Source of the DNA: Cyanophora paradoxa CCMP329
Lineage: Eukaryota; Plantae; Glaucophyta
Direction: 5' to 3'
Assembly (NCBI GenBank): GCA_004431415.1
Contig: QPMI01000275.1
Coordinates: 1-64,000 of the forward strand
Length of the DNA stretch: 64,000 bases
Shown here: piece after piece, positions 6,168-61,460 of the stretch
Numbering within the stretch: position 1 is the first letter of the stretch
Layout of the letters: each line of letters begins with the position of its first letter
Translations under genes and position numbers: made by a program
Notes under the pieces: generated by a model
The model's database searches: none
Told to the model about the DNA's origin: nothing
What the model saw: only the letters and a program-made list of their open reading frames with translations

Positions 6168-7110
6168 ATGACCGGCGCAAAGGTCCTCGTTGTCTTCTAC
6201 TCCACTTACGGCCACCTCTGGAAGATGGCCGAGGTGCTTTGCTGCAGATCGAAGCGCGCGCGCGCTTGTGCGCGTAGCTAATCTGCAGCTGGCTATGCCC
6301 CGCACGTGCAGGCCGTTGCGGACGGAGCGCGGAAGGCCGGCGCCACCGTGACCCTGAAGCGAGTGCCGGAGACCCTGCCTAAGGAGGTCCTGGACAAGAT
6401 GGGCGCGACCGCCGCACAGCAGGCGTTCGCTCACATCCCCGTCGCCGATCCGAAGGAGCTCGACCAGTACGACGTGCGCATGCGCTTGTCAGCCATTCCC
6501 GGCCGCGTCGCTTTGCCCGACACGTGCAACCGCGCAGGCAATCATCATCGGCACTCCGACCCGCTTCGGTGCGTTCGCTCTCTCCAGAGACCAGCCCGGC
6601 TCCATATCTGAGTCTCTTCGCTTCGCAGGGAGCATGTGCGGGCAGATGCGCGCGTTCTGGGACGCCACCGGCGGGCTGGTGTGCACTGTGCAATACCCTC
6701 TGCCCGGTGCCCTCGAGCTCGCATCTCACCCCTCCCGTCTCGCAGTGGGCTTCGGGCGCTCTGGTCGGCAAGGTCGGCGGCGTGTTCGTTGGCACCGCGA
6801 CCCAGCACGGCGGCCAGGTGCGGCTTCCCGCCGCCCCCTCCTGCCCCCGCCCCGGCGAACGCCCCGGGCGCAGGAGTCGACGATCCTGTCGACGCACACG
6901 ACGCTGCTGCACCACGGCATGGTCATCGTCGGCCTGCCGTACGCCTTCACCGGCCAGATGGGCGTCGAGGAGGTCAAGGGCGGCTCCCCGTACGGCGCCT
7001 CGACGATCGCCGGCGGGCAGGGCGAGCGCCAGCCGTCGGCGGTCGAGCTCGACGGCGCCCGCTTCCAGGGCAAGCACACCGCCGAGATCGCCGCCAAGCT
7101 GCGCAAGTAG
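6168..7110 (+). CDS. wrbA: WrbA-family flavodoxin-like NAD(P)H:quinone oxidoreductase, 6 exons
   Basis: Spliced product: [22 protein letters not shown]|[23 protein letters not shown]...ELDQYD|[11 protein letters not shown]|[16 protein letters not shown]|[24 protein letters not shown]|[23 protein letters not shown]...[12 protein letters not shown]...[21 protein letters not shown]. WrbA motifs are present and there are five GT-AG introns. Confidence 0.95.
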
Positions 7111-7353: not shown

Positions 7354-7408
7354 GGCGGCGATCTCAGCGGTGTGCTTGCCCTGGAAGCGGGCGCCGTCAA
7401 GCTCGACC
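7354..7408 (-). repeat. 55-bp inverted copy of the wrbA 3' coding end (7041-7095)
   Basis: The reverse complement of 7354-7408 matches 7041-7095 with 2 mismatches. Confidence 0.95.
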
Positions 7409-7594: not shown

Positions 7595-7925
7595 CGACTC
7601 CGCGGGCTAGTTAATTCCCCTAACGCGATCCGCGCCCGCGGCCGCGGCCGGCCGCGGCCGGCGATCCCGGGCGCCCGCGGCGCGCGCGTACGGCCGCGGC
7701 AAAACATCACAAACAACGGCAAGCCAGCGGCCTTGGGGTCGATCTGCAGTCTGCGGCCTCGATCCGGTTCGGCTCCGCTCGGCACAGTTCCGGCAACCCG
7801 TACCCCCCGCCAGCCGCGAACCGCTTTTTTGTCCTCGAAATGAGCGCATCCCGCACCCGCCAGCGAGGCCGTCGTATGCGCCGCGTACCTGTGTTGCGAT
7901 GCTGCGCCCCGCACGCCCCGCTATC

Positions 7926-10900
7926 ATGGGGCGCCTCCGCCTGCTCCTCGCGCTCCTCGCGCTGCTCAGCCCGGCCCGAAGCGGTGAGCCCCTGGTGCTG
8001 TCCAGGTTTGGGCGTTCTCGATGGCTGACTCGCAGGGGCCGCAGCGTGCCCGCCGGCGAGCTCGGTCACGGCGCTGGGGCCGAACGCGGGAGAGGTGAGC
8101 CCGGGCTCGCTGCAGGCGGAACTGGCGGTGGCGCTCGGGGCGGACCTCGACGTCGAGTTCCGATTCCTCCCCCTCGACCCCAGCGTGCGCGCCCCGCGGC
8201 CCGCGGCAAGCCGCGAGGCCGCAGCTAACGCGGCGGGGCGGGCGGGGCGCGCAGGTGCCACTCGATGTGCACTTCGTGAGCGACCGGTCGAACGGGGGCG
8301 ACTGGGCGGGCGGCGGGGCGCTGGCGGGGCGCCTCGCGGCCGACTGGAGCGCCCTCGCGGCCGCCCACGGCGACCTGCGCTTCGGCCTCGCCGCCTGCGT
8401 GCGCCCGCCGCACGCCCGCCGCCGCACGCACGCGGCGCCGACGGCGGCGGCAGAGCGGAGCGGCGCTGGAGGCGGTGTTCGGCCTGCGGCCCTTCGGCGG
8501 GGCGGCGGAGGTGGCGCAGGCGGCCGCCGCCGTGGCGCCGGCGGCGGCCCGTGCAGCGCCGACCCCGCAGACGTCCTCAGGTGCCGCCCGGCGCCCGGCG
8601 CGGAGCAGTCTGCCGGCCGCCGCTGACGCCGCGCAGCGAGGCGGCGCGCGCGCCGTGGCGGGCGGGGCCCGCCGCCTCCTCGTCATCCGATTCGACGGCT
8701 TTCCCGGCGCGGTGCGGCCCGCCGGAGCCCGCCCGCGCGGCGCCTGGCCGTGCTGACCCCGCGGCAGGCCGGCGCGGCGGCGTGTGCGCGGCGCGGGGCG
8801 CGGCGGGGCGCTGCGGGGCGCGGCTGAGGGGCCGGGGCGCAGGGGCGGCGGGGGCGGAGGGGCTGCGGGCGCGGGCGTGTGGCCGGTGGTGCTGGCGGCG
8901 GGGCCGGGCGGGGCCGCCGCCGTGGGCTTCGGGTCGGCGGCGGGCCGCTGGAGGCGGCCGGCGAGGTGGGGCGCTGCTGGCGGCGGTGGCGGCCACGCGC
9001 GGCGCGCCCGGCGCCGGCGTCGCCGTCCGTGTCGCCAGTGATCCGCGCGGCATCGCCCTCGCCTCGCCGGCCCGTCCGCCGCCCCGCCCGCCCCGGGGCG
9101 CCGCCCTGACAGCGGCGGCAGGCGGGCGGGCGGCGGGGGCGGGCCGCTGGTGCTGGACGCGGCGCCGGCGGGGCGGCCTTCCGCGTGACGCTCGGCCTGC
9201 GGGGCGCGGCGCTCGGCGGCGCGCCGCCGCTGTGGGCCGCGGGGCCGCCCCCGCCGAGGCCCTCCTCGTCGTCGGCGGGCCCTTCGCCCCCAACGCCGTC
9301 CGCCCCCCGCGCCCCGCGCCCCGCGCCTTTAAGTGCGGCGGGCACAGACGGTGCGGGTGCGGGCGACGGCGGCGCTCGACACGAGCTGCAGCGAGGAGGC
9401 GGTGCCCCTGCGGCGCGGGGGCGCCCCGGGCGTCCCCGGCGTCTGCGAGCTTCCCCTCCGCAACTGGTGCGAGCGAGTCGGCTCCCATTGCACCCCAGCA
9501 ACCTAACCATATCCTTCTCTTCAGGTGCGTGGACGGCCGCTTCCAGCCGGCGATGGGGAACGTGCTCCTCGCGGCGGGCTGCCTGCGGGACAACAACACG
9601 GGGCTCACCTCCGCCGACAAGCGCTTCCTCCCCTCCGACGTGCGCTTTCTAACGCCGTCTTAATCTTAACGCTTTGGAGCTGAATCCTGAACGCCCCGAG
9701 CCTTGCGCTTCTGTTATATATCTTTACGCCGTGCGGGGCAGCTGGTCTTCTCTTCTACCCCGGGCGCCTTCTCGGGATCCATCGCCAAGGAGACAGGTGG
9801 GGCCCGAGCCGGCTAAGCCCCGCCCTCGTCGCCACCCGGCGGAATGCCGCCCGGCAGGCCCGCTCGACGTCTACAAGACGGCGTCGGTGTCGGGGTTCCC
9901 CCGCCTGGCGGTGGTCCGGACGGCGGGGACGGCGGCGGGGGCGGCCGGGTCGATGTTCTTCGCGCAGCGCGTCCCCTTCCGCCGCGGCTTCCAGGCCCGC
10001 CCGCCCGCCCGCCCGCCCGCCCGCCCGGGGCCGCGCCGGCGGCCTGACGGCGCGCGCGCAGGTCGTCTTCAACTACACAATGATCGCCGAGACCGTCTCC
10101 TCCGTGCGCCCGCCCGCCCCGCCCGCCTCCGCCCCGCGCAGCCGTGGCCGAGCGGGCGGCAGCCGACGAGCGGGACGCGGCGGATCGCACCGATGCCGGC
10201 GGACCTCTGCGCGGGGGTCGCCCTCGTGCTGCACGGCAACGCGGCGGCGGGCAGCTCGGGCCGGCGGGCCGGCGTCGGCTACGGCGGCGTGCCGCGGAGC
10301 GTGGCGGTGGAGCTCGACTGCGGGCGGGACGCGGCGGCCGGCGACCCCGACGCCAACCACGCGAGCGTGCACCTTAACGGCGACCCCGCCGAGGGCCCCG
10401 CCCTCGCCCGGGCCTCCTGGGAGCCGGCGCCGTACCCCGGCTTCCCGCTGCGGGCCGCCGCCTCGGGGGCGCCGGCCCTGCAGGACACGCCGGCGGGGGA
10501 CTACCCGGGGCCCCACGCCGGCGTCGCCGACGGCGCCCTCGTCGCCCCGTTCCGCTGGACCGTGCGCGCGTTCTCCTATTCGTCTCTTCTTTGTTATGAC
10601 CAGATATGACCGCCTTCTTCAGGTGCCTTTCTTCAACTGGATGCCGAACGAGGAAGTGCTCCTCGTGACGCAGAGCTTCACCCCTTTCCGATGCGGCTAC
10701 CAGCTCGCCGGCAACCAGGCCCGTTAGCCACCCCGCGGCCCTTGCTCGGGTTTCGTTCTTGGCGGCTGACGGGCGCGGGGCGCAGGTGGTGGTGACGTAC
10801 CACGCGGTGGGGGGCGTGCTGACGGTCGACTTCAACGGGCGGCGCCTCCTCGCCGCCCCCGTCGACCTTGAGGCCGCCCTCGGCTGTCCGCCCCCGCCCG

Positions 10901-13900
10901 CCCGCCCGCCCGCCCGCCCGCCCGCCCCGCCGCGCTTGACGGGCCGCAGCGCCGGCGGACGGGGCGATGTACGTCGGCCTCACGGCCGCCGTCCGCGGCA
11001 CGGCCGACGCGAGCCGCGCGGGGACCACGTTCGCCGTCGACGCCACCCACTTCTCCGTCCTGTCGGGCGGTCCAAGCCGCCCGCCACCCGCCGTCCGCCC
11101 GTCTCTTCCCCCCTTTCTGACTAGGCGCCCCTTTCTTTTTCGGCGCAGGCAATTACTACGACGAGGCGGTGGACCCTCGGCCCTTCAACCTCGCGCCCCC
11201 CGTCGACGTCGTCCGCGGCCCGGCCGGCCCCGTCGCCGCCGGCGCGCCCGTCACCCTCACCGTCGCCCGCTCCCTTCTCTACCGGGTCCGTCCTTGCAAA
11301 TCTTTTATGATTACACGGTCTCTTCTAACTTTTCTTGTTTTCGTCTTCTTAGGGCGCCGACTGGAGCTGGTCGACTCCCTCGGACGGCGATGGAAGCGCG
11401 CCGTCCCTCACGTACCGCTGCGTCGAAAGCTGCGCGCCGGGGGCGCCCTCGGCCCCTCAGCGGGCGGCGCTCTCGGCCTCCCCCGGCGCCCGCGGGGCCT
11501 ACTCGGCCGACCTCGGCGCCCTCCCGCCCGGACGCTACCAGGCGCTTACCGCCGACTCCGCCGCCGAGTTCGAAGTCGCCGCCGGTCCGAACCTGAGCCT
11601 CACCTCACCTGAGCTCTGCCTGAGCTTCACCTGAACTCCGCCTTCGCCCAGGGGGCCGGCCGAGCGCGGCGGAGAGCTACGCTTTCCTTTCGGAGGCGCC
11701 GAAGGCCGCGACGTCCGTACCCCGGGTGCGATCGATTGAATGTAAAGTGGAGCTGCCCGGATTCGAACCGACGCCGCTCGCTCTGCAGCGCATTGCGTTT
11801 GGTGTGGTGTGGCGGGACGCGGCGGGGGGCCTCGCGGCGCCCGACCCCTCCGCCCTCGCCGCCGCCCTCGAGGCCGACGGCGGCGGCCCGGCCCCGCCCC
11901 TCGCCGGCCCCCGCGCCTCCTCCCCTCCGGCCTCTACGAGGTACCCCCGCCCGCCCCGCGCCCGCGCCGCCCTGACGCCCGCGGCGGGTCGCGGCGGCGC
12001 TCCTGCGGGCGGCTTCGCGCTGCGGCTGAGCTACGGCGGCGCCGCGCTGCCCCGGGCCCCCTCCGCTTCTCCGTCGCCCCTACCCCTCCCCCTCCCTTCC
12101 CCTCCCCTCCGCGAGCCCCTCCCCTCCCATCCCCGGCGCCTCCTCGCCCCCGTCCCGACCCCCACCCCCGGCCCTCCCCGACCCCGCCCCCGGCTGGGAG
12201 GGCGCGCGCCCGTCGCTGGTCGCGTGCGGCGGCCCCGCGCCGCGCGCCCTCCCCGCGGCCGCCCCCAACTGCTCCTTCCCCGCCGGCGCCCCCGACCAGG
12301 CGCTCTGGGTCGCCCTCGCACCCCCCGAGGGAGTGTTCCCCCCTGCCGGCGCGGCGCCGGCTCTGCTCGCGGACGTCTCGTGCCACCCGCCTGAGCGGTC
12401 CCTCGTGAATCTTACACGCTTTTCTGTGTTCGAGGATGCGCCGCCGCCCTGGCCTCTCTACTGGGTACGCGTTCCTCTTCGTTCGCTTAAGCGTCCGCCC
12501 CCTTCCGACCCCCCCGCAGCTGGCACTCAACGCGACGGCGGCGGGCGCCTGCAACGCGACCGTCGGCGGCGCCGCCGGAGCGCCCCGCGGAGTTTTCTCG
12601 ATTACTGTCCTCCCCGGTCCGCCCCGCCGTCCCTTAGATTTCAGGCGGGGCGCCGCCTGAGGGGGCGGCAGGCGCCGTGGACGCGCTGCGGTCGCGGCTG
12701 GAGGGGGGCGGGCCGGCCGCGCTGCCCCTCCTCCTCGCCGGCCCCGACGCCAACGCGTGCGCCCCGCCGCCGGCCCCGCGCGCCCCGCGCCCCTCAGCGG
12801 CCCGCAGGACGCTCCGCTTCTGCGCCGCCGACGCGTACGGCAACGCCGTCGCCCGCCGCTCGCCCCGCCGCTCGCCGCCGTGCTCGTCAACGCCTCCGCG
12901 GCGCGCCGCTGGCGGTGCCGGCGGAGGCGGAGGCGGCCGGCGGCTGCGCGCGGCTGCGCGTGCGGGCGCCGCGGGGCAGTACGCGCTGGAGCTGCGGCTC
13001 GGGGGCGCGCCGCTGCGGGCGCCGTGGCTGCCGCGCGGCGCCAGCGTCTTCGTGGACGGGCCGCCGTGCAGCACGCCGGCCCTCCTCTGCCCGACTGGTC
13101 CTGCGCCCCCGACCCCGCCGCCTGCGCCACCCGCCGCCTCTGCTTCGACGGCTCCGAGGCGGCCGACGGGCGCCCGTGCCCCGCGTGCGCGCCCCGCCGC
13201 CGGCCCCGCGCGGCCCGCCCGCTGACGGCGGCCGCAGCCGCCGTGGCTGCGGGCGGTGCGGGCGGCGGATTTGCCGCTCGTGTTCGGGCGCGGGCGACGG
13301 CGGAGGCGACGGCGGCCGACGCCTCCGGCGAGCCCCTCGCGCGCGTCGCTCTCTTCGGCGGCGGCGCAGCGGCGGCGGAGGCGGGGCGGCAGGGGCGGAG
13401 GCGATGGGGCCGGGGACGAGGCGCCGTTCGGGGCGCTGCGGGTGGGCCCCGGGCGGGGGCCGGGCCGGGGCGGCTCTCGGCGGCGGTGGCGCTGGCGCTG
13501 GCGGCGGCGGAGGGCGCGCCGCGCGGCCTCACCGGCGCGCTGCTCGCGCCGGCCCTCGGGCCCGTCGAAGTCGCCCTCCGCGCCGCCGTCCCGCCCGACG
13601 TGCGCCGCCCCGCCCCCGCCCTCGCGCCGCGCCGCGGGCGCTGAGTGGGCGGCAGGCGCGGGGGCGTGCGTGGCGCGGTGGAACGCGAGCAGCGGGGCGT
13701 GGGTGTGCGTGCCCGGCGGGACCCGCTTCGAGCCGGACGCGGCGGGGCGGCGCGGCGGGCGGCGCGGGCGCTGGCGCCGGGCTGGCGCGTCGGGTGGTTC
13801 GCGGCGGCCGTGACCCTCGCGGAGCCCCTCACGCTCGCCCTCGTCGCGCTGCCCGCCCCGGGCCCAGCCCGCCCCCGCCCCCGTCCCCGTCCCCGTCCCC

Positions 13901-14686
13901 GGCCGAGACCCCTTTCCTGTCCCCGTCACCGACCCCGTCACCATCCCCGTCTCCGGCCGCGGGGCCCTTGCCGTCGCCCGGCGCGGGGAATGGGACGGAG
14001 GCGCGGAACGCGAGCGGCCCGCGGCCGTGCGCGGGCGGCGCCGGCGCGAATCCCACCACCGACTGCGGCGCCGGCGACCCTCCGCCTCTGCAGGGTCCGC
14101 GCGCACTCGTTTTGCTTCGTTTGTTTCGCGAGCGGCCGCCGCAGCGGACGTGCGCGCATCGGAGCCGGCGACGCCGGGCGGCGGCGGCGGCGGGGCGGCG
14201 GCGGGCGGCGTGCTGGGCACAGCGGCGGCGGTGGCGGCGCTGGCGTGCGTGGCGGCGGCGCGGCGGCGGCGGGCGCGGCGGGCGCGGCGCGAGTACGAGA
14301 GCCTGCTGGTGCGCGGGCCGGGGCCGGGCGCGGGCGGGCGCGGGCGCAGGGCGGGCGCGAGCCGGGGCGGCGCAGCGGGAGGACCTGGACGCGGCGGCCG
14401 GCGGCGACGGGGCGGCCGAGGAGCACTGGGCCCCAACGCCCTCGCCGCCCGCGCCCGCCGCCCCGCGCCGGCAGAGGCGAGGGGGGCGGAGGGGGCGCGG
14501 GAGGGGCCGCCCGCCCCGTCCGAGGCGGGCGATCGCGAGGGGCCGGCGGGGGCGGCGGAGTGGGAGCCGAACCCATCGTACCCTTCCGGGGACGGCGGCG
14601 GGGAGGGCGGGGAGGGCTCCTGGGAGGGCAACCCGTCCTACCCGCCCCGCGCGGGGACCGCTACCCCTCGGGAAGCCCCGTCCTGA
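7926..14686 (+). CDS. Single-pass type I receptor, copy A: signal peptide, integrin-beta-like hybrid/vWA region, L-type (legume) lectin-like domain, filamin/Ig-like repeats, (SP)n stalk, TM helix, tail with two NPxY motifs
   Basis: Signal MGRLRLLLALLALLSPARS. vWA-like strands VPLDVHFVSDRS, DLRFGLAA and WRAGARRLLVIRFDG. Lectin motifs AGSMFFAQRV, GVALVLHG and GVGYGGVPRSVAVELDCGRDAAAGDPDANHASVH. Filamin-like GGFALRLSYGG and [26 protein letters not shown] stalk; TM GGVLGTAAAVAALACVAAA followed by RRRR; tail WEPNPSY...WEGNPSY. Some homopolymer frameshifts. Confidence 0.8.
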
Positions 14687-15144: not shown

Positions 15145-17264
15145 TTACTGCTGGCGGACGAATTCGAAGGCGCCCGTAAGAACGACGCCGAAGACTGCAG
15201 CGATGAAACTGACGGCGGCCGCGAAGGGAGCCATCGGCACTGCTGCCGAGAAGTACGGGACCGACGCCGGCGCCGGCGCCGCTGCGGCGGTCCACGTGAA
15301 CGCGTTCGCGAGCGTGAAGGCTCGGAAACTGTTCTTGTCCGAGCTGATCCGCAGGTCGAAGCCCTGCCCGACGTCGAAGCCGGCGTTCGTCGCCTGAAGG
15401 AGGGCGCGCCCCGAGGTCGAAGTGGACACCTGACAGGAAGCAAGCGCAGGGGCGCCTGCCGAAACGCCATCGATATCAGTCCCAAATCAAAATCCGAATT
15501 CAAAGATATCGATATAGAAGCGCACGGAAACGAATGATGGTTCGCGAGACGACGCGGGGGTTGACTGCTGGGCACGCGCGGCCCCCGGGGCTGATGATAA
15601 TGATTGTAATCGGTTCCCCTTCGGGGAAGCCGTCCCCGACAATGTCGACGTCACCTCCCTCCTGCGCACGCCCACCGCGTCAGCGATCGTGGTCTTGTGC
15701 ATGATCGCGATTCGATTTAAATTTCAGATCACTGTAGCTAGTTAGCTTGCATGCCTTCGATGTTTGAATGACCGGCTTATCGAGGCGAGCTGTGTTGCTC
15801 GCATCGAAGACGAGACGAATGTTAGAGGATGCGCCAACGCCTTGTACAATAACCTGGGTGATTGTCTGCGCGCCCGCGGGTTTCGGCGTGATGAATCTAA
15901 AGCAAATCATGACTCTACAGATCTAGAAAAGCAGACGCGTATACAAATGAAATGCGCCCACCGCCTGGAATGGGGCGACGTCTGGAGCCGCGGTTGGCGT
16001 CGGCTTCGGCGCGGATGCCGCAGGGGACGGGGACGGCGTTGGGGCGTCGGGGGCCGTTCCGGGCGTGGAAGGCGAGGGAGAGGGCGTGGCTTGGGCGGAT
16101 CCGGGGCTCGTCGGCGAGGGGCTGGCCATGGACGACGTCGACGGGGAATTCGAAGGCGTCGGGGCCGATAGCTCGGATGGCGAGGGGCTGGGGCTCGGGC
16201 TCGCGCTGGGGCTGGGGCTGGGGCTCGAGCTCGGGCTGGGGCTGGGGCTGGGGCTGGGGCTGGGGCTCGCGCTGGGGCTGGGGCTGGGGCTGGGGCTGGG
16301 GCTGGGGCTGGGGCTGGGGCTGGGGCTGGGGCTCGGTGTCTCGCTGCGCGGTGGAACGAAATAATCAGCCCGGGCAATCGCAATTGCAAGCATCGCATCG
16401 AGACCGTTGACCTCGGCGACGGGGATGGGGACGGGCTGCAGTAATATTAATGTCAAAGATTCGGTGAGATTGGCGAAGGGGGCGCGCATTCACCTGGGCG
16501 AAGGAGAAGGGGTAGGGGTAATGGGATTCACGCATTTATTATTGACGGTATCCGCCACAAGAGGTTGGTTGCATTTGCAGATCGGTGTGCCGGCGCCGGA
16601 GTTTCCAAGGATGGCCCCATCCTCCGCACAGACGTTGACGCAATAGTTCGAGGAGTTGTAGACAGAGGTGACCATAGGCGAATTGCAGCAACAAAAATCG
16701 GTTGAACCCGCGGTATACTTCTGTCCGTTGGTGCAGACCCCAGAGCAGACTTCTCCTGGGGCCTTGTGGGAGATAGATTTGGCGGTGACAAAGTCGCGTG
16801 TGCGGGACCCGAGCTGCTGCTTCTGGGGGCGCGAGCTCGAGGTGGCACGCGTAGCACGTGGAGGAGCACCGGCACCTGCTGGCGTCCATGATTGATATCG
16901 ATAAAGTGATTAAATACTGATGATGTCATGACGGACCAAGGTTGGCTGTAAACGTGGCGATGCCTGCGACTGCTTGCAGTTCTGCGGGCTCATGCATTTG
17001 GCCAGACACGAACTCCGTCGACGTCGATTCTGAAGCGCATTTGGGGTGATGACCTATGAAAGCCGAGCCGCTCAAGCTTGCCAAAGTTGGGCTTTGCTGT
17101 TGGATATGCGCATGCCCTGCAGCCGCAACTGCACATGTACATGTTGAAAACCAGAGCATTCCAATGAACACCGCATTTGCGAGGACGACCGAAGCTGATG
17201 CAGCACACGACGCGTTGCTATTTGCTCGGCCGCGCGTGCATGCACAGATGTCGGCGATCCGCAT
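15145..17264 (-). CDS. Secreted or surface (Ser-Pro)n glycoprotein (HRGP-like) with a Cys-rich module and a hydrophobic C-terminus (TM or GPI signal)
   Basis: Hydrophobic N-terminal segment [24 protein letters not shown]. Cys-rich exons (CSGVCTNGQ; [10 protein letters not shown]...[21 protein letters not shown]). Long AGCCCC hexamer array encoding (SP)n at ~16180-16335. SGRALLQA motif, then [20 protein letters not shown] and a stop at 15145. Start codon uncertain. Confidence 0.7.
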
Positions 17265-19086: not shown

Positions 19087-22000
19087 ATGCATACGCGTGT
19101 AATCGTAACGCTGCAGCTGGTCTTTGGCCTGCTGTTGTTTGTCCAACCCTGCCGGCCTCTTGAGCTTGCAGCTGCGCATCCGGCTACAGCGGCATTCGTG
19201 CAGACGCAGGTGCATCAGAGAGAATGCGATATCAACCCGCAGTATCACGCAGACGTCGAGCTCGGTGGGGTGTCGGGCTCGGCAGGGCCTTCAGCATGCG
19301 CAGCTGGCGCCGCAGCGATAGCGTGCACAGCTGCAGATGCAGCTGCGACTCGCGCTATCGATATTGCTGAGGCTGCAACCGGCTGCGGTTCGGCAACGAC
19401 AACTCACGTGCACCCACAAATTTCAATCGAGGCACATGATGAATACGCATACGCACACGCAGACGCCGCGTTCGGCGCTGGCGCCAAAGACGAACACGAA
19501 CATGATCATGAGCAGGCGCACGCGGGAGCAATGGGGGAGCACGGAGGGCCGTACGACCACCCCGAGGTGCGTCGACGTCTCAGCTCGAGATTGTATGCCG
19601 CAGTGCATGCGTACAAGTAGAAACTCGTGCTTGATTGTGGACCGACTGACGCTGTTTCTTTCCGCAGTTGCTCAAAGACCTGCTCACCGCCGATGAAGTG
19701 AACTTCTTAATTGACTTGAGCGATCAACAAAAAGAACCGTATCTTTACCTGCATCCACAAGGTCCGCTTATTCTATGCGCGCGCACCTACGCGTAAAATT
19801 CGAGACACGAACGTCCGTAGAATTCAGGAATGGTAGCCGGCTACGGTCTGTTATCGAAAAGATTATTGACCGCCTCGGTCCTTCGTATTTGTATGAAGAC
19901 ATCCTCTCCGACGGCGTTCGCATTTTCTTGTGAGTTTTAAGGCCGGGCTTCGATGTGATCATTCAAGAACTGCCGATCGTGCTGCAGTACTAGTGCACTG
20001 CGCGCATGCGGCACGAGCACGTGCGCACCCCTCACACAGCTCGCAGATACGCCCCTGAAAATACCAGAACCGTATTTGCGAATGACTATCACAATGATGC
20101 GTGAGTAAATATAATTCTTAAAGCTTTGCTGCCAAATCGCAAATCTTTTAATTTCTAAAGACGAAGTTCTCTTTGCGTGCCCGGCCGCGCAGTTGCTGTT
20201 TGGATGACTGTGGGGAGTGGTACAAAAAGTGCGTATACGTATACACGACTAATTGAAAAACTAGAGGTCGAACGGTAGGATAGAAGCGAGGGATTTAGAT
20301 CCCTCGCGGGTGTGGCGGAGGCGCTAGGCGTGCTTCCGTTCAAGAAGCGGCGGCGTCCCCCGTTCTCGAGGCGCAGAAGAATGCGCGCACCTCGCGGGCG
20401 CTGTCGTACGTCAGTTCCCGTACAGAGAGAGGTACGTGCGCTCGCGCGCTGCCTCTTGGCTCTGTTTCTGCTCCGTGACGAGTCTCAGTGATTTGAGCGG
20501 AGCCGTCTTCAGCGGGATTTAGATCTCTGGATTTGGACAGAGTTTAGCCTAGAGGCTTTTGCCTGCGCGATGCAGGAGCTGCACTCACCGGGCGTGGCCG
20601 CGGTGAGGAGCTAAAGGCGCTGCCCGACAGCAATTTGATCGGGAGGCCAAGACAACGATTCCAGCAGGGAACGAGGCAGGACTCTGAAAAGCGAGTCAGC
20701 AGTGTCGGAAAAGAAGGAAAGAAGCCCGAACCGCGGCGGTGGGCGAACGATTGACGTGGAGGGGCTTGCCGCCGCCCAGGGCGTTGTCGATAGGCGGGGC
20801 ATTTCGCATCGTTCTGTGCGGTCGTAAGACTTGAGCGACGGCGCGGGCGGCGAGGTGTCGGCGTCTGGGCGCACGGAAGCGAAGTTCAAACGCGGCGAAT
20901 GTGCTTTTTGCAGCAGGGTACGTGACTTTTATAGGACCCGGGGGAGGAGACCCCAGGGGGGTACGCTGTTATGCGTGTTGCAATTTGGACCTTGCAAGTT
21001 GGGTACATGATTGTATTTTTAAAAAAAACAAACAACGCCGAGAAGGCTATTCTTTCGCGCGAGAAAGAGACAGCCGAGGCGCTGCGCGCGCGGCGGGGGG
21101 CGGCCGCGCGCGCTGCGCCGAGGCTGTGACCCACCACTAACCCAGCGGAGATTTCCGCTCGGCCGCGGCCTGCGAGATTCTCAGTACCAGAGGTAAGGCA
21201 CGGAAATGAACGGGTTGCGTACGCGTTCAAGCGGAGCTGGAGGCTCCGTCCGATTAGCCCGACCTGCTGGCGACTGAGTGAGTAGTCGCAGCAGGCCGTG
21301 GCCGCCTTCGTATTTTCGAAGAATGCGGCAAGAATGCGGCTAGCGCTGACGCAATGTCTAGATCTGTTACAGGGTTTGGAAGGCGTGCACGGGGAGGGCG
21401 AACCCAGGGCGAAGGGTGGCGCCGAGCACTGTTGGAATGGGCAGATCCGATGTGCATCAGATCAAGGGCCGACGCCAGGACGGCAAAGAGAAGAGTAAAG
21501 CTCTGAAGATGAAGAGAGCGTGCAGGAGCATGCAAGTGCGCATGCAAGAAGTGAGCCGACTCGGAGATTGACTCGGAGTGAGCTGAAGCGAGGTGCACCG
21601 CGGAGGTGGAGAGAGAGACAAGGAGAAGCAAGATGAAAGGAATGTGCTCGTGCGGGGGATGAGCTTCAGCTCGGGTGCTGCGCCACTCGGGAATCAGTTG
21701 GCGAGCGTCGAACGCGCGTCTGGAGGCGCGTACCTGGTAAGCGAGCATATAGCTGCTGTTCTGCGGGCAGAGAAAGATCAGGAATCTAGCTCGGGAAGAG
21801 CAAGAGCGCAGAGCACGCACGCGCTACTGGAATGAGCCGGTCCGATGCGCATCAGATCGAGGGCCGACGCCAGGACGGCAAAGAGAAGAGTAAAGCTCTG
21901 TAGATGAAGAGAGCGTGGCCTGCAGGAGCATGCAAGTGCGCATGTAAGAAGTGAGCCGACTCAGAGATTGACTCGGAGTGAGCTGAAGCGAGGTGCACCG

Positions 22001-25000
22001 CGGAGGCGGAGAGAGAAACAAGGAGAAGCCATCCAAAAAGGAAGATGAAAGGAATGTGCTCGTGTGGGGGATGAGCTTCAGCTCGGGTGCTGCGCCACTC
22101 GGGAATCAGTTGGCGAGCGTCGAACGCGCGTCTGGAGGCGCGTACCTGGTAAGCGAGCATATAGCTGCTGTTCTGCGGGCAGAGAAAGATCAGGAATCTA
22201 GCTCGGGAAGAGCAAGAGCGCAGAGCACGCACGTGCTGGGCGGGCGTAAGAGCCACGAGCTGCAGCTGCAAGAACCCCGTCATGGACGCTTCTGCGAGGA
22301 GGAGCAGATTCTGAGCTTAGAGAGAGACCGACGGTCAGCAAGATCGCAGCGTACGATCCCAGGATCGCGGCGCCGATGCAGGGCGTGGAGGTCAATCGTT
22401 AGAGCCGCGCCGTTCTGGACGCTTCTGCGGCGCGGAGCAGCGGCAGTCCTTAAGACCTCGGAAAGATCGCAGTTTTAGAAGCACGCACGCACGATTCGAG
22501 GATCGCGGGCGCTGCCGGACACGCTGTGTCCTTGGTGTTGGCGCGCGGAGGGCGCCCTGCTTTGCTGCATTTGATGGAGCTGCTCAAAGGACAGCTGCAG
22601 GCCGGTTAGAACGTGAAGTTTCGGGCGAGGGCGGGCAGGCACACGATGAACGTGGCTGACGCGGCGGTGGAGGCCGATCCTGCTTGAGCTTCGCGGCTGA
22701 TGCCGGGGAGATGTTATCGTTGGAGCTTGCAGATGAGCATGGGCAAGTGATCATGAGCTGGCAGGACGATGCGCCGCCACCAGTCGATGTAATGGTTGGA
22801 AGCGCGAGAGCGCAGAGTTGAGGTTGAAGCGGCTTTGTTTTGAATAGATTGCTCGTCACGGAAGTTCAGAATCGAAGAGCCAGAGGCTGAACGCGGTAAA
22901 GATTAGATTGAGGTGCAGAATCGACCGAGGACGAAGTCCACGGGAATGGAACGGAAGAACACCTTATTCGACCGAAGACGAAGTCTTCGGGACGCCTACG
23001 CGCGTGGACAGTGCACCGGAGATGTCGAGGAGAGCTCATCGCCTGAGGGTAGTCCCTGCCCGTCAGGCTCGCAGTCGCTCGTCTCATGTATGGCGCGCGT
23101 AGGATAGAAGCGAGGGATTTAGATCCCTCGCGGGTGTGGCGGAGGCGCTAGGCGTGCTTCCGTTCAAGAAGCGGCGGCGTCCCCCGTTCTCGAGGCGCAG
23201 AAGAATGCGCGCACCTCGCGGGCGCTGTCGTACGTCAGTTCCCGTACAGAGAGAGGTACGTGCGCTCGCGCGCTGCCTCTTGGCTCTGTTTCTGCTCCGT
23301 GACGAGTCTCAGTGATTTGAGCGGAGCCGTCTTCAGCGGGATTTAGATCTCTGGATTTGGACAGAGTTTAGCCTAGAGGCTTTTGCCTGCGCGATGCAGG
23401 AGCTGCACTCACCGGGCGTGGCCGCGGTGAGGAGCTAAAGGCGCTGCCCGACAGCAATTTGATCGGGAGGCCAAGACAACGATTCCAGCAGGGAACGAGG
23501 CAGGACTCTGAAAAGCGAGTCAGCAGTGTCGGAAAAGAAGGAAAGAAGCCCGAACCGCGGCGGTGGGCGAACGATTGACGTGGAGGGGCTTGCCGCCGCC
23601 CAGGGCGTTGTCGATAGGCGGGGCATTTCGCATCGTTCTGTGCGGTCGTAAGACTTGAGCGACGGCGCGGGCGGCGAGGTGTCGGCGTCTGGGCGCACGG
23701 AAGCGAAGTTCAAACGCGGCGAATGTGCTTTTTGCAGCAGGGTACGTGACTTTTATAGGACCGGGGGAGGAGACCCCAGGGGGTACGCTGTTATGCGTGT
23801 TGCAATTTGGACCTTGCAAGTTGGGTACATGATTGTATTTTTAAAAAACAAACAACGCCGAGAAGGCTATTCTTTCGCGCGAGAAAGAGACAGCCGAGGC
23901 GCTGCGCGCGCGGCGGGGGGCGGCCGCGCGCGCTGCGCCGAGGCTGTGACCCACCACTAACCCAGCGGAGATTTCCGCTCGGCCGCGGCCTGCGAGATTC
24001 TCAGTACCAGAGGTAAGGCACGGAAATGAACGGGTTGCGTACGCGTTCAAGCGGAGCTGGAGGCTCCGTCCGATTAGCCCGACCTGCTGGCGACTGAGTG
24101 AGTAGTCGCAGCAGGCCGTGGCCGCCTTCGTATTTTGGATGACTGTTTGGATGACTGTGGGGAGTGGTACAAAAAGTGCGTATACGTATACACGACTAAT
24201 TGAAAAACTAGAGGTCGAACGCTAAGCTAAGCAATGATCAATTCGTACATTTTGTAGGTACAACGATGGGCGCCAGCGGCGGTCGGGGATGGTGGTCTGG
24301 CTCAACAGCGGCTCGGAATACGAGGGCGGCTTCACCGAGTTCGTGGTCCGCGATCGCGATCGCCGGCGCCGTCGTCCCCGGCCCCGGCCCGCGGCCGCGG
24401 GCCAGGTCCACGCTGCTCCGAATGATGCTTGGGGCTCCGGCCCATCTGCAAAGTAGAATCTCGGATTCGAGATCAAGGGACCGCCTGGCTGGGGTATAAA
24501 GTTCGACTTGCTACAGAAGGACTCTCTGTTCTGGTACATCAAACTTCTTACAGTGATACGTTCAGCTTCTTGTCTTGCCTTTGAATCTGGAGCAGCCACG
24601 ATTTCGCCGTCCACCGCGCCGGCCAGACGATCCGCGGCCAGAGGAGGTTCGTGGGTATCGAAGCTACAGCCGGTCAGGCTGGTTTATGCGAGACGAAAAA
24701 CGTATACTCTTTGCTCAAAAAATTCCGCGCATGTGCAGAGTAATGACCATTTTTATCAACGCACCTTACACGTGGATGGAGTCACGGGAAATAAAGGGCC
24801 CACAAGGCTACAACAGCACCCTCGCAAACGAGCTACGAGAGAAGTTTCAGCGTGCTAGCGTTAACGTTCACGATCGCGATCAAGCGGAGTCGGATCCGGA
24901 GTCAGTGCGGGTACCGGATTCGAAGACGGATTCCGATGCGCATTACTTGGATTTCGGGTCTGTGCGGCCAGAGGTGGGCTAGCTATAGCGCTGTTTCACA

Positions 25001-36361: not shown

Positions 36362-39300
36362 TCAGGACGGGGCCTCCAGAGGGGTCGCGGCCCCCGCGGG
36401 GGGCGGGTAGGACGGGTTGCCCTCCCAGGAGCCCTCCCCGTCCTCGCCGCCGCCGGCCCCGGAGGGGTACGACGGGTTCGGCTCCCACTCCGGCGCCCCC
36501 GCCGGCCCATCGCGATCGCCGGCCTCGGACGGGGCGGGTGGCCCCTCCCGCGCCGCCGCCCCCGCCGCCTCCCCCGCCTCGCGATCGGCCGCCGCGGGGC
36601 GGCGGGCGCGGGCGGCGAGGGCGTTGGGGGCCCAGTGCTCCTCGTCCGCCCCGTCGCCGCCGGCCGCCGCGTCCAGGTCCTCCCGCTGCGCCGCCCCCGC
36701 TCGCGCCCGCCCCGCGCCCCGCCCCGGCCCCGCGCGCGCCCCCGGCCCGCGCACCAGCAGGCTCTCGTACTCGCGCCGCGCCCGCCGCGCCCGCCGCCGC
36801 CGCGCCGCCGCCACACACGCCACCGCCGCCACCGCCGCCGCCGCGCCCAGCACGCCGCCCGCCGCCGCCCCGCCGCCGCCGCCGCCGCCCCGTGCCGCCG
36901 ACTCCGACACGCGCACGTCCGCTGCAGGGGCCGCTCGCGAAACACACGAAGCGAAACGAGCGCGCGCGGACCGTGCAGGGGCGGAGGGTCGCTGGCACCG
37001 CAGTCGGTGGAATTCGCGCCGGCGCCGCCCGCGCACGGGCCGCTCGCGTTCCGCGCCTCCGTCCCGTTCGCCGCGCCAGGCGACGGCGAGGGCCCCGCGG
37101 CCAGGGACGGCTCCGAGGACGGGGATGGTGACGGGGAAGGGGGCGGGGACGGGGAAGGGGTCTCGGCCGGGGGCGGGGACGGGGACGGGGACGGGGACGG
37201 GGTTGGGCTGGGCCCCGGGGCGGGCGGCGCGACGAGGGCGAGCGTGAGGGGCTCCGCGAGGGTCACGGCCGCCGCGAACCACCCGACGCGCCAGCCCGGC
37301 GCCAGCGCCCGCGCCGCCCGCCGCGCCGCCCCCGCCGCGTCCGGCTCGAAGCGGGTCCCGCCGGGCACGCACACCCACGCCCCGCTGCTCGCGTTCCACC
37401 GCGCCACGCACGCCCCCGCCGCCTGCCGCCCACTCAGCGCCCGCGGCGCGGCGCGAGGGGCGGGGGCGTGGACGGGGGCGGCACACGTCGGGCGGGGCGG
37501 CGGCGCGGAGGGCGACTTCGACGGGCCCGAGGGCCGGCGCGAGCAGCGCGCCCGTGAGGCCGCGCGGCGCGCCCTCCGCCGCCGCCAGCGCCAGCGCCAC
37601 CGCCGCCGAGAGCCGCCCCGCCCCGCCTCCCGCCCCGGGCCCACCCGCAGCGCCCCGAACGGCGCCTCGTCCCCGGCCCCCATCGCCTCCGCCCCCGCCG
37701 CCTCCGCCTCTGCCGCCTCCGCCGCCTCTGCCGCCTCTGCCGCCGCAGCGCCGCCGAAGAGAGCGACGCGTGCGAGGGGCTCGCCGGAGGCGTCGGCCGC
37801 CGCCGCCTGCGCCGTCGCCCCGCGCCCGAACACGAGCGGCAGCTCCGCCGCCCGCACCGCCCGCAGCCACGGCGGCTGCGGCCGGCGTCAGCGGGGCGGG
37901 CCGCGCGGGGCCGGCGGCGGGGCGCGCACGCGGGGGCACGGGCGCCCGTCGGCCGCCTCGGAGCCGTCGAAGCAGAGGCGGCGGGCGGCGCAGGCGGCGG
38001 GGTCGGGGGCGCAGGACCAGTCGGGGCAGAGGAGGGCCGGCGCGCTGCACGGCGGCCCGTCCACGAAGACGCTGGGGCCGCGCGGCAGCCACGGCGCCCG
38101 CAGCGGCGCGCCCCGAGCCGCAGCTCCAGCGCGTACTGCCCCGCGGCGCCCGCACGAGCAGCTGCGTGCAGCCGCCGGCCGCCTCCGCCTCCGCCGGCAC
38201 CGCCAGCGTCGCGCCGCCGGAGGCGTTGACGAGCGCGGCGGCGAGCGGCGGGGCGAGCGGCGGGGCGACGGCGTTGCCGAACGCGTCGGCCGCGCAGAAG
38301 CGGAGCGTCCTGCGGGGCCGCTGAGGGGCGCGGGGCGCGCGGGGCCGGCGGCGGGGCTTACGCGTTGGCGTCGGGGCCGGCGAGGAGGATGGGCAGCGCG
38401 GCCGGCCCGCCCCCCTCCAGCCGCGACCGCAGCGCGTCCACGGGGCCTGCCGCCCCCTCAGGCGGGCCGCCAGTGCGCTCGGGAGGGGCGGCGGGCCGTA
38501 CCGGGGAGGACAGTAATCGAGAAAACTCCGAGGGGCGCTCCGGCGGCGCCGCCGACGGTCGCGTTGCAGGCGCCCGCCGCCGTCGCGTTGAGCGACAGCT
38601 GCGGGGGGCCGGTGTCAGGAGGGGTGGCCTCCTGGACGAACGGAGGGAAACGCGTACCCGGAAGAGGGGTAAGGACAGACGAGGCGAGTCCACAACGAAG
38701 ATCCGCGTGAGGTTGATGAGGGACCGCTCGGGCGGGTGGCAGGAGACGTCCGCGTGCAGAGCCGGCGCCGCGTCGGCCGGGGGGAGCATTCCCTCGGGGG
38801 GTACAAGGGCGACCCAGAGCGCCTGGTCGGGGGCGCCGGCGGGGAAGGAGCAGTTGGGGGCCGCCGCGGGGAGGGCCCGCGGCGCGGGGCCGCCGCACGC
38901 GACCAGCAACAAGCGCGCGCCCTCCCAGCCGGGGGCGGGGTCGGGGAGGGGCCGGGGTGGGGGACGGGGACGGGGGCGTGGAGGGCGCCGGGGAGGGGAG
39001 GGGGAGGGGCTGGCGGAGGGGAGGGGGACGGGGAGGGGAGGGGGTAGGGGCCACGGAGAACCGGAGGGGGCCCGGGGGCAGCTCGGCGCCGCCGTAGCTC
39101 AGCCGCAGCGCGAAGCCGCCCGCCGGCATCGCCGCCGCGACCCGCCGCGGGCGTCAGGGCGGCTGAGGGCGGGGTGCGGGGCGGGCGGGGGTACCTCGTA
39201 GAGGCCGGAAGGGAGGAGGCGCGGGGGGCCGGCGAGGGGCGGGGCGGGGCCGCCGCCGTCGGCCTCGAGGGCGGCGGCGAGGGCGGAGGGGTCGGGCGCC

Positions 39301-42300
39301 GCGGGGCCGCCCGCCGCGTCCCGCCAAACCACACCGAACGCGATGCGCTGCAGAGCGAACGGCGTCAGAATGAAGAAATTGAGCCCGTTACGGCATCAAG
39401 TGCTAGTTTCACTTTGAACTACATCTTACGCGTAGAAGCCGACGCACCGCGGGGCCAGGGACGAACGACGCGGCCGCGAGGAAGGCGCCGGAGGCTTCCG
39501 CGCTGGGTCCCGCTGCGGCCGAGGGGGCGTGAGCGAGGGCCGGGGGGGAAGGCCGGAGGCCCCCGGGGGGGTACCGTGCGCGACGGCGAAGGTGGCCGAG
39601 GAGTTGGCGCTGATCGCCTCGTAAAGGCCCGGCGCGAGGGCGCCGAGGTGGGCCGAGTAGGCCCCGCGGGCCCCCGAGGGCGAGAGCGCCGCCCGCTGAG
39701 GGGCGGAGGGCGCCCCCGGCGCGCAGCTTTCGACGCAGCGGTACGTGAGGAACGGGGTTGCCCCGTCGACGGCGGGTACTGGAAAGCTCCAGGTCCAGCC
39801 GCTCCCCTTCAGAGCAAAGTGAGGGGAAGCGAAAAGGATGAAAATGGGGCGGCGAGCGGTGCAGCGCACCCGGTAGAGAAGGGAGCGGGCGACGGTGAGG
39901 GTGACGGGCGCGCCGGCGGCGACGGGGCCGGGCGGGCCGCGGACGACGTCGGTGGGGGGCTGGAAGTTCGGGGGGTACGGGAACCGCATCTGCTCGAAGT
40001 AGTGTCCTGCGGCGGGCTGAGAGAGAAGGCGGGGTAGCGTGATTGGAAGCGGGAGGCAGAGGGGACCTGCGGTTAGGACGGAGAAGTGGGTCGCGTCGAC
40101 GGCGAAGGTGGTCCCCGCGCGGCTCGCGTCGGGCGTGCCGCGGACGGCGGCGGTGAGGCCGACGTACATCGCCCCGTCCGCCGGCGCTGCGGCCCGTCAG
40201 GCGCGGCGGGGCGGGGCGGGCGGGCGGGCGGGCGGGCGGGGCGGACAGCCGAGGGCGGCCTCCAGGTCGATTGGGGCGGCGAGGAGGCGCCGCCCGTTGA
40301 AGTCCACCGTCAGCACGCCCCCCACCGCGTGGTACGTCACCACCACCTGCGCCCACGCGCCCGTCAGCCGCCAAGAATGAAACCCGAGCGAGGGCCGCGG
40401 GGTGGCTAACGGGCCTGGTTGCCGGCGAGCTGGTAGCGGCACGGGCTCCGGGCCTCGCTGTAGGTGCTCCACAGAAAGTCGCCCATCGCCGAGCGCGTCA
40501 CGTCGTACCGTCCCGCCTGCGCGCGGGGCGCTCGAGGCTAGGCGGGCGGGTCGGGCAGAGGCAGGAGCAAAGCGGCGCGCACCGCCGACACGAAAGGGGC
40601 GACGAGGGCGCCGTCGGCGACGCCGGCGTCGGGCCCCGGGTAGTCCCCCGCCGGCGTGTCCGGAAGGGCCGGCGCCCCCGAGGCGGCGGCCCGCAGCGGG
40701 AAGCCGGGGTACGGCGCGGGCTCCCACGAGGCGCGGGCGAGGGCGGGGCCCTCGGCGGGGTCCCCGTTAAGGTGCACGCTCGCGTGGTTGGCGTCGGGGT
40801 CGCCGGCCGCCGCGTCCCGCCCGCAGTCGAGCTCGACGGCCACGCTCCGCGGCACGCCGCCGTAGCCGACGCCGGCGCCGCCGGCCCCGAGCTGCGCCGC
40901 CGCCGCGTTGCCGTGCAGCACGAGGGCGACCCCCGCGCAGAGGTCCGCCGGCATCGGTGCGATCCGCCGCGTCCCGCTCGTCGGCTGCCGCGCGCTCGGC
41001 CGCGGCTACGCGGGGCGGGGCGGGGCGGGGCGGGCGGGCGCACCGAGGAGACCGTCTCGGCGATCATTGTGTAGTTGAAGACGACCTGTGCGCGCGCCGT
41101 CAGGCCGCCGGCGAGGCCCCGGCGGCCCGGGGCGGGCGGGCGGGCGGGCCTGGAAGCCGCGGCGGAAGGGGACGCGCTGCGCGAAGAACATCGACCCGGC
41201 CGCCCCCGCCGCCGTCCCCGCCGTCCGGACAACCGCCACTCGAGCGAGCCCGGGATCCGACCCGGAGCCGTACACGTCCAAGGCGCCTGAGGCGAGATTT
41301 CGTCCGAATTCGATCGCTTTTCGAACTGAGATTTGATCGCCGCGCACCGGTCTGACTCGCGATGGGCCCCGAAAAGGCGCCGGGGGTAGAGGAGAAAACG
41401 AGATCCTGGAGCTACCCAACGAGTTACAGGGGTACATGTCCAGGCCTCCGGGGGGGTTCATGCTCACGGCGGGGGCCAGGGAGGTGTTGGAGAAGGGGCG
41501 GAAGCAGCCCGTGGAGTAGCGGACGTTGGCGAGGGGGGGTACCGCGTGCGGCACGCACCAGAGGCGGCTGTGTAGCGTGCGCCGGCAGCCGCCGCGCTGG
41601 CCCGGGTTCCAGCCGCCCCGCAGGGGCACGGCCTCCTCGCTGCAGGCCGTGTCGAGCGCCGCCGTCGCCCGCACCCGCACCGTCTGCGCCCGGCGCACTT
41701 AGGGGCGCGGGGCGCGGGTCGCGGGGGGCGGGGGGCGGACGGCGTTGGGGCGAAGGGCCCGCCGGCGACGAGGAGGGCCTCGGCGGGGCGGCCCCCGCGG
41801 CCCACAGCGGCGGCGCGCCGGCGAGCGCCGCGCCCCGCAGGCCGAGCGTCACGCGGAAGGCCGCCCCGCCGGCGCCGCGTCCAGCAGCAGCGGCCCGCCC
41901 CCCGCCGCCCGCCCCGCCTGCCGCCGCTGTCAGGGCGGCGCCCCGGGGCGGGGCGGGGCGGGCGGGGGCGGCGGACGGGGCCGGCGAGGGCGACGGCGAT
42001 GCCGCGCGGGTCGCTGGCGACGCGGACGGCGACGCCGGCGCCGGGCGCGCCGCGCGTGGCCGCCACTGCCGCCAGCAGCGCCCCCGCCTCGCCCGCCCCT
42101 CCAGCGGCCCCGCCGCCGACCCGAAGCCCCACGGCGGCGGCCCCGCCCCGGGCCCCGCCGCCATCACCACCGGCCACACGCCCCGCGCCCGCAACCCCTC
42201 CGCCCCCGCCCCCCTGCGCCCCGGCCCCCTCAGCCCCGCCCCGCCGCGCCCCGCCGCGCCCCGCGCCGCGCACACGCCGCCGCGCCGGCCTGCCGCGGGG

Positions 42301-43132
42301 TCAGTGCGGCCAGGCGCCGCACGGGCGGGCGCCGGCGGGCCGCACCGTGCCGGGGAAGCCGTCGAATCGGATGACGAGGAGGCGGCGGGCCCCCGCCCGC
42401 CACGGCGCGCGCGCCGCCTCGCTGCGCGGCGTCAGCGGCGGCCGGCAGACTGCTCCGCGCCGGGCGCCGGGCGGCACCTGAGGACGTCTGCGGGGTCGGC
42501 GCTGCACGGGGCCGCCGCCGGCGCAACGGCGGCGGCCGCCTGCGCCACCTCCGCCGCCCCGCCGAAGGGCCGCAGGCCGAACACCGTCTCCAGCGCCTCT
42601 CCGCTCTGCCGTCGCCGTCGGCGCCGCGCGCGGGGCGGGCGTGCGGGCGGCGGGCGCACGCAGGCGGCGAGGCCGAAGCGCAGGTCGCCGTGGGCGGCGG
42701 CGAGGGCGCTCCAGTCGGCCGCGAGGCGCCCCGCCAGCGCCCCGCCGCCCGCCCAGTCGCCCGCGTTCGACCGGTCGCTCACGAAGTGCACATCGAGCGG
42801 CACCTGCGCGCCCCGCCCGCCCCGCCGCGTTAGCTGCGGCCTCGCCGCTGGCCGCCGGCCGCGGGGCGCGCACGGTGGGGTCGAGGGGGAGGAATCGGAA
42901 CTCGACGTCGAGGTCCGCCCCGAGCGCCACCGCCAGCTCCGCCTGCAGCGAGCCCGGGCTCACCTCTCCCGCGTCCGGCCCCACCACCGTGACCGAGCTC
43001 GCCGGCGGGCACGCTGCGGCCCCTTCGAGTCAGCCATCGAGGCCGCCCAAACCTGGGCAGCACCAAAGGCTCACCGCTCCGTGCAGGGCTGAGCAGCGCG
43101 AGGAGCGCGAGGAGCAGGCGGAGGCGCCCCAT
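36362..43132 (-). CDS. Single-pass type I receptor, copy B (inverted paralogue of 7926-14686)
   Basis: Same exon order and motifs as copy A: MGRLRLLLALLALLSPARS, VPLDVHFVSDRS, WRAGARRLLVIRFDG, GVGYGGVPRSVAVELDC, (SP)n, TM, RREYESLL, WEPNPSY, WEGNPSY. Confidence 0.8.
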
Positions 43133-58304: not shown

Positions 58305-58714
58305 CAGTCGCTGTTCATGAAAGATCTGCGGCTCTAGCTCGCGGTCAGCTAGCGTCGACGTCAGCGCGGGTCGGCGCGCTGGCGCCGCGCGCGCTGCAGT
58401 GCGCATGCGGGCGCGGGCGCACTTGTGGGGCGGGATCGCGCCGCCTGCGTCGTCAGAAGGCATCGATCGGCTGCGCCAGCTTTAGCGCGTAGCTTTCCGC
58501 TGCTTCGCCAGGGAGGGGTACGTATACGTTTGCTGACCTGCATCGATATCGCGCCTCGACCGACAGCCCAGGAACAGACCGGCGATCGCAAGCAAGCGAA
58601 CAGACGCGGGCGAGGTGCGAGAGGCCGCTCGACTCGCACGGCCCGCGCGGCTCATTGCGCGATTTCAACGCCCGCTGACCGCCGGGGCTGCAGACCTGCC
58701 GGGAGCAGCGAGCG

Positions 58715-61426: not shown

Positions 61427-61460
<34 letters not shown>

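Follow-up and report, generated by a model that had tools for sequence, protein, structure and literature searches.

The window analysed here, 64,000 nucleotides (nt) of contig QPMI01000275.1 of the glaucophyte Cyanophora paradoxa CCMP329, carries a receptor gene in two inverted copies, copy A at 7926-14686 on the forward strand (+) and copy B at 43132-36362 on the reverse strand (-). The predicted product is a type I membrane protein of about 1700 residues that consists of a signal peptide, a head of the vWA (von Willebrand factor A) type, a four-Cys module, an L-type lectin, beta-rich repeats, a Ser-Pro stalk, one membrane helix and a cytoplasmic tail. Its novelty lies in the lineage, namely in the presence of a head of the integrin-beta class together with two NPxY motifs in a glaucophyte. 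We lean towards the interpretation that the protein would work as a stand-alone receptor in the manner of Dictyostelium SibA or the type II integrin beta proteins (ITGB) of Variosea, not as part of an alpha-beta integrin, and that it would capture glycans for uptake or adhesion. The two copies, the lectin, the stalk and the membrane helix had been proposed in a preliminary description of this DNA and were borne out, and the head segments quoted there are present in the claimed order (8045-9466 in copy A, 43013-41560 in copy B).

The gene is real, spliced and transcribed. DNA and RNA contigs were compared with positions 7940-13939 of the window, and spliced contigs were obtained from three RNA-type runs. 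One RNA contig with copy-B-type letters covers position 8121 and joins 8255-8398 to 8454-8577 (exons 2-3-4), exon 8 (9135-9297) is spliced to exon 9, and 13429-13600 is joined to 13658-13854. Since another RNA contig, running from exon 9 through the lectin, covers 9384 to 10548 (9384, 9524-9639, 9855-9986 and 10162-10548), the lectin and the final part of the head lie on the same contig, in line with the proposal that they belong to one transcript. The exon found in copy A only (9525-9639) is present unchanged in RNA contigs, and both copies appear to be transcribed. The joints between exons 5, 6 and 7 are not among the RNA contig matches listed; no single RNA contig covers the whole gene, and the contigs are possibly mosaics of both copies. 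The introns measure 47-77 nt, have GT or GC as donor and contain a branch motif of the CTRAC type, and the last exon of copy B is one open frame from the membrane helix to the stop codon. Within 10156-10548, DNA and RNA contigs mix the letters of copies A and B differently; chimeric contigs, a third copy or conversion still in progress between strains may account for this.

DNA and RNA contigs restore a G or C at eleven listed places (8923, 10248/50, 10257, 12851, 12897, 12972, 13089, 13178, 13405, 13450 and 13743). Because these contigs put the bases back, the frameshifts are errors of the assembly at runs of G or C, and a reading of the gene as a pseudogene is ruled out. Out of 36 single-base differences between the copies, 26 lie within runs of at least three and 31 are losses in copy A. 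The C. paradoxa assembly was built from PacBio reads that were Illumina-corrected where coverage sufficed (PMC6704402). The public model of the gene (EukProt EP00741 P007606, tig00001177_g7358.t1, hereafter P0001), whose 28 pieces map exactly to 7899-14683, follows the assembly errors and is out of frame over about one third of the head, and for this reason the receptor has remained without annotation. It may serve as an example of genes overlooked through out-of-frame public models.

Sequence comparison gives fair support for assigning the vWA domain to the class that comprises integrin betaI, Dictyostelium Sib and bacterial VWA_4 domains. The head was searched both as the whole longest open reading frame or public model and exon by exon. 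With language-model features, the ten best named clusters for residues 40-365 of P0001 all belonged to the vWA clan, including VWA_4 and Integrin_beta (0.83-0.86), and when the generic vWA families were skipped and VWA_4 was kept in, Integrin_beta clusters took ranks 1, 3 and 10 for residues 40-226 (0.85). A DNA scan of prokaryotic genomes for the exon-5 motif returned 78 matches, which is near chance; three of them lie in vWA proteins, one with an identical stretch of ten residues, and these three match VWA_4, vWA_SIBA-E and Integrin_beta and have integrin beta chains as their closest solved structures. As these proteins served as seeds of the subsequent profile, the evidence from exon 5 is partly circular; the choice of seeds was made without exon 3. 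The profile of 14 related bacterial and viral domains aligned to exons 3-4 at strand A, helix 1 and strand B in the correct register (hhalign P=0.0042), and exons 3 and 5 scored in the right places when taken singly (z=4.2 and z=3.4), with p=0.008 for exon 3 against a bacterial protein introduced below (L094). In the six reading frames of the window, a hidden Markov model built from 14-17 bacterial vWA domains gave the exons no higher rank than noise. Matches to HMG-CoA synthase and flavoproteins in the library searches were attributed to chance, as was that of GGDWAGGG to an S-layer protein (L001).

The I-like domain of the preliminary description was supported by features and profiles. Also borne out were the absence of a specificity loop and the degenerate state of the metal ion-dependent adhesion site (MIDAS), which reads D-R-S-N-G/A and lacks the third position, a Ser, of DxSxS: the Asp, the first Ser and the strand-D Asp are kept, and a Gly stands for the second Ser. 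The PEGG motif had been described as seemingly absent; D-P-A-D stands at the position of D-x-P-E, and an acidic residue may therefore persist there. The profile search suggested in that description found the lectin in Pfam and no match to Integrin_beta (PF00362) or Filamin. The full set of residues typical of integrin beta at the MIDAS, at the site adjacent to it (ADMIDAS) and at the synergistic metal-binding site (SyMBS) is not present (D-R-S-N-G/A; D-P-A-D). No PSI or EGF domain was matched in Pfam; a lone Cys stands before the head and the four-Cys module after it. Because MIDAS, PSI and EGF legs depart from the canonical form, we do not file the receptor as a member of the integrin beta family.

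The vWA domain is probably wrapped by a hybrid domain. A compact head of the hybrid+vWA kind occurs in two bacterial proteins encoded on plasmids, WP_274249891.1 of Arthrobacter (L081:1851-3215) and WP_137195905.1 of Pseudorhodobacter (L094:1321-2406), which have an intact metal site and integrin beta as their best matches in the PDB. Four hybrid pieces, from exons 2, 7 and 8, have their best local match to one or the other of these proteins where it would be expected, and in order, examples being VSPGSLQAELAV on IAPETFSADLAL, FRVTLGL on FTVNIAV and LVAGG on LVDGG. The insertion of the vWA domain into a hybrid domain, as originally proposed, fits the register of the two bacterial proteins by eye and is not backed by the statistics, since shuffled pieces do equally well; a single-sequence AlphaFold model of the head reached a predicted local distance difference test score (pLDDT) of 36. 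The proposed derivation from integrin beta was not established, as the same head also occurs in these bacteria.

Signal peptide and single membrane helix are both present, and the tail of 145 residues (a single frame in copy B) contains EYESLL followed by two W-x-x-NPSY motifs. Across all six reading frames of the window, W..NPx[YF] matches just four times, at these two motifs in each copy, and 20000 shuffled tails never produced two of them. The two NPxY motifs are 20 residues apart and resemble an internal repeat. The Trp before each NPxY, the G-x-x-x-G of the helix and the R-R-E-Y after it recall what we take to be features of integrin-beta tails. The alpha-contact motif LLxxxHDRKE is absent, with an Arg run and then R-R-E-Y in its place, and the tail C-terminus has neither of the KKxx and FF motifs of the endoplasmic reticulum (ER). 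The two-NPxY tail, a feature beyond the preliminary description, strengthens an integrin-like reading of the receptor.

The L-type lectin of the preliminary description was recovered as Pfam Lectin_L-type_dom (PF18483, E=1.2e-4, below the curated cut-off) and by alignment to the legume lectin 7elv (E=0.23), in which the GYGG, SVAVE-D and H motifs are aligned. The motifs expected of a legume lectin are present, namely A-D-G, the G-Y-G-G loop, the V-E-x-D metal site and the His, with Asp replacing the sugar-binding Asn and A-D shifted by three residues. Lectin and stalk stand where EGF legs would be expected, as proposed. The repeats between them had been called filamin/Ig-like: the region is indeed beta-rich and its sole match is PKD (E=0.055), and the filamin label comes from motif resemblance, with no match to Filamin (PF00630) in the spacer pieces, which are broken by assembly errors. 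An AlphaFold model of the first spacer domain is all-beta at low confidence (pLDDT 51) and had no match in a structure search. Closer to the membrane, at 13656-13860 (+) and 37423-37220 (-), C-x-x-x-W-N...W and a closing F-A-A-A-V strand recall GPS/GAIN-B or ZU5-like sandwiches, an unconfirmed likeness; this segment has no H-x-T/S cleavage triad and no Pfam match.

The two copies are 94.6% identical with the exception of seven sharply bounded patches, which together make up 1294 nt of 56% identity and 64% GC, exons and introns alike, compared to about 95% identity and 83% GC elsewhere. The patches take in the Cys module, the lectin loop and the lectin end, introns included, and this pattern is in line with gene conversion by which segments for recognition are spared or swapped. 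The intron 9467-9524 is present in copy A and absent from copy B; its first five bases, GTGCG, equal the start of the next exon, it is far less GC-rich than nearby introns, and it represents a recent gain or loss. In the conserved parts of the lectin, 17 codons differ synonymously and 6 non-synonymously between the copies, and the head is under weaker purifying selection than this lectin core (12:15 vs 17:6, p=0.047).

Searches for homologues with the longest open reading frame of the head against 1.84 billion representative proteins gave one match, the gene's own public model P0001. Only this model was likewise found among 5.8 billion proteins, with no homologue in other eukaryotes, and scans of plasmid, phage, viral and prokaryotic genomes remained blank. 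The lack of orthologues favours a lineage-specific assembly, and sparse glaucophyte data and broken gene models may also explain it. Searches of the open-access literature gave no account of an integrin-beta-like protein from Cyanophora or other Archaeplastida; integrin beta has been reported from Amorphea and one species of CRuMs.

In the stand-alone receptor that we favour, the lectin would bind glycans, be they from microbes, viruses or other cells or from secreted mucilage, and the copy-specific patches may shift its specificity. The integrin-beta-like head at the tip, with its vWA domain probably clasped by the hybrid domain, could serve as a module for protein contacts or oligomerisation, its metal-dependent binding being weak or absent. 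Cargo would be passed via EYESLL to AP-type clathrin adaptors, AP2 and clathrin being present in the major eukaryotic branches (PMC4824007), and the two NPxY motifs would engage a candidate reader of the PTB/FERM type, with uptake, recycling or anchoring as possible outcomes. The head would most simply stem from the widespread bacterial hybrid+vWA family, or from an old shared pool, and would have been shuffled onto a lectin receptor. Several observations speak against this interpretation. The head, whole or by exon, had no match in sequence searches of Pfam, PHROG, NCBIfam and the PDB, and exons 4, 7, 8 and 9 score at chance level. The feature searches are leads only, because their scores are below 0.9 and fewer than 170 features are shared. 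The RNA contigs, compared over 7940-13939, gave no joint to the membrane exon. Finally, the NPxY reader is puzzling: a survey of Plantae found neither integrin nor talin, including no talin in glaucophytes (PMC4494055), and PTB-based cargo adaptors are metazoan (PMC4824007).

Shuffled versions of the Ala/Gly-rich hybrid pieces match as well as the pieces themselves (Fisher combined p=0.94). This result, the AlphaFold score of the head and the weaker purifying selection on it would also suit a generic vWA domain without a hybrid, the likeness of flanks and tail being due to chance in an Ala/Gly-rich gene of 83% GC. We consider this improbable, as the best matches of the four hybrid pieces keep to the order and places expected from L081 or L094, Integrin_beta came first though VWA_4 had not been skipped, and the doubled NPxY is far above chance. 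An intracellular cargo-sorting lectin of the Golgi, endosome or mucocyst, which would seldom reach the surface and would resemble ERGIC-53/VIP36 or a vacuolar sorting receptor, would be in line with an L-type lectin on one helix, with YxxPhi and acidic dileucine signals and with the mucocysts and active secretory system of C. paradoxa (PMC6704402); the very long ectodomain, the Ser-Pro stalk and the copy-specific patches suit an exposed recognition protein better, and KKxx/FF motifs are absent. We regard such a lectin as very unlikely.

A true, vertically inherited member of the integrin beta family, in which head, helix and double-NPxY tail would together predate the divergence of Amorphea and Archaeplastida, with lectin and Ig domains taking the place of the legs as they do in type II ITGB, is unlikely in our view, even if the Integrin_beta clusters top the feature search and the tail presumably resembles those of integrin beta (W-NPxY twice, G-x-x-x-G, R-R-E-Y). 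Becker et al. detected alpha-actinin in glaucophytes and argued that the ancestor of Archaeplastida had the integrin system, which would speak for such descent. It is opposed by the lack of PSI and EGF domains, the incomplete MIDAS, the length of the tail and the spacing of its NPxY motifs, and likewise by the absence of a homologue in other eukaryotes, the occurrence of the same head in bacteria and the absence of a known talin in the lineage. We are equally doubtful of its extension, according to which such an inherited receptor turned to diversifying glycan recognition with a talin-independent adaptor. If vertical descent were true, the origin of the beta subunit would be placed at the common ancestor of Amorphea and Archaeplastida. 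Either the family is thus pushed deeper, or the combination of vWA head, one helix and NPxY tail was rebuilt from bacterial parts, as has been proposed for Sib; in addition, the receptor raises the question of how NPxY is read in a lineage for which neither talin nor PTB adaptors are known.

Table 1 Features of the receptor gene (positions in the window; copy A unless indicated).
Feature	Position	Strand	Remarks
Copy B	36362..43132	-	exon layout as in copy A; B-type letters in RNA contigs
Exon 1, signal peptide	7926..7983	+	3 differences to copy B, all synonymous
Exon 2, lone Cys, then putative first hybrid half (VSPGSL... segment)	8045..8184	+	RNA contig 8044-8182; register of L094/L081 N-terminus, p=0.19
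Exon 3, strands A and B and helix 1 of vWA; MIDAS incomplete (D-R-S-N-G)	8255..8398	+	hhalign P=0.0042; z=4.2; p=0.008 vs L094; spliced RNA contig
Exon 4, strand C and helix 2 of vWA; D-P-A-D at D-x-P-E position	8454..8580	+	assembly frameshift near 8548
Exon 5, WRxGARRLLVxxxD, vWA strand D	8637..8711	+	motif also in bacterial VWA_4/Integrin_beta-class proteins; z=3.4
Exons 6-7, remaining vWA and start of putative second hybrid half	8768..9073	+	assigned by order only, score not significant
Exons 8-9, putative second hybrid half ending in Cys, then start of four-Cys module	9122..9466	+	RNA contig 9135-9297 to exon 9
Four-Cys module	9411..9639	+	sequence divergent between copies, Cys spacing kept
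L-type (legume/ConA-like) lectin, seven exons	9742..11071	+	PF18483 E=1.2e-4; 7elv E=0.23; copy-specific loop ~10550-10700
Beta-rich repeats of the spacer, resembling Ig/PKD or filamin in motifs only	11149..13060	+	Pro/Ser linker near 12070-12190
Short Cys-rich segment and membrane-proximal beta domain	13060..13860	+	spliced RNA contig 13429-13854; no Pfam match
Ser-Pro stalk, N-glycosylation sequons, two Cys	13861..14094	+	
Single membrane helix with G-x-x-x-G, then Arg run	14204..14260	+	hydropathy 1.95-2.1 over 19 residues, both copies
EYESLL, YxxPhi overlapping acidic dileucine sorting motif	14291..14308	+	identical in both copies
Two W-x-x-NPSY motifs	14561..14641	+	sole W..NPx[YF] matches in six frames of window, two per copy
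Divergent patches (matching parts in copy B)	9411-9890, 10550-10700, 11057-11200, 11290-11400, 11535-11780, 12400-12490, 12590-12660		

Several other gene pairs in the window are inverted as well. Among them is a duplicate MFS transporter gene (33654-35601 and 51024-52975; Pfam MFS_1) that is 95-96% identical between copies and carries the nitrate signature AGWGNMGGG (NRT2-like). Near-perfect direct repeats occur at 20275-24137 and 58552-62697 with spacings of about 2824 and 3846 nt. The 3' end of an upstream WrbA-like gene recurs as an inverted copy of 55 nt, 260 nt downstream of that gene and just before the receptor's upstream region (7040-7095 and 7354-7408), and a separate gene adjoining copy A contains a long (Ser-Pro)n repeat (16184-16333, -).

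With regard to known systems, single features of the receptor are found in several proteins. The Acanthamoeba mannose-binding protein is a single-pass lectin with an NPxY tail and no integrin-beta-like head (PMC12686525), and the prasinophyte beta-gralin SAP126 is an algal ConA-like membrane receptor of type II that also lacks such a head and belongs to a family not found in glaucophytes (PMC4494055). The bacterial hybrid+vWA surface proteins (WP_274249891.1, WP_137195905.1; VWA_4, PF25106) are the nearest sequences reached and share the segment order, the compact build and the absence of a specificity loop, but differ in their intact DxSxS/DTTGS and GGDxPE motifs, their sortase-type anchors and their lack of a lectin and an NPxY tail. 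With animal and holozoan integrin beta (PF00362, PF17205) the receptor shares the strand/helix order of betaI, the probable hybrid wrap and two NPxY motifs, each after a Trp, whereas it has no PSI, EGF or beta-tail domains, no Ser at the third position of DxSxS and no specificity loop, and its tail is three times longer.

The closest parallels are SibA and the type II ITGB. Dictyostelium SibA, an adhesion and phagocytosis receptor, likewise combines a vWA domain, one helix and two NPxY motifs without an alpha partner (PMC12686525); it differs in having bacterial-type repeats, in binding talin and in lacking a lectin, and neither vWA_SIBA-E (PF24909) nor bacterial-type repeats were matched in Pfam by the receptor. 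The type II ITGB of Variosea (Kang et al., 10.1101/2020.04.29.069435), compared by description and in architecture only, are similarly large (1405-3641 residues) and combine an ITGB head with a variable MIDAS/ADMIDAS, a GxxxG helix and, instead of EGF legs, domains of the ConA-like (LamG3) and Ig-like kinds; the Ig-like part of this layout is weakly supported in our receptor. They differ in having been described from Amoebozoa alone, in mostly keeping the SyMBS and in having LamG3 instead of a legume-type lectin, and amoebozoan ITGB share with the receptor the absence of LLxxxHDRKE. The architecture, described at the outset as an unrecognised one, thus has precedents in type II ITGB and SibA, and what is new is its occurrence in the glaucophyte lineage.

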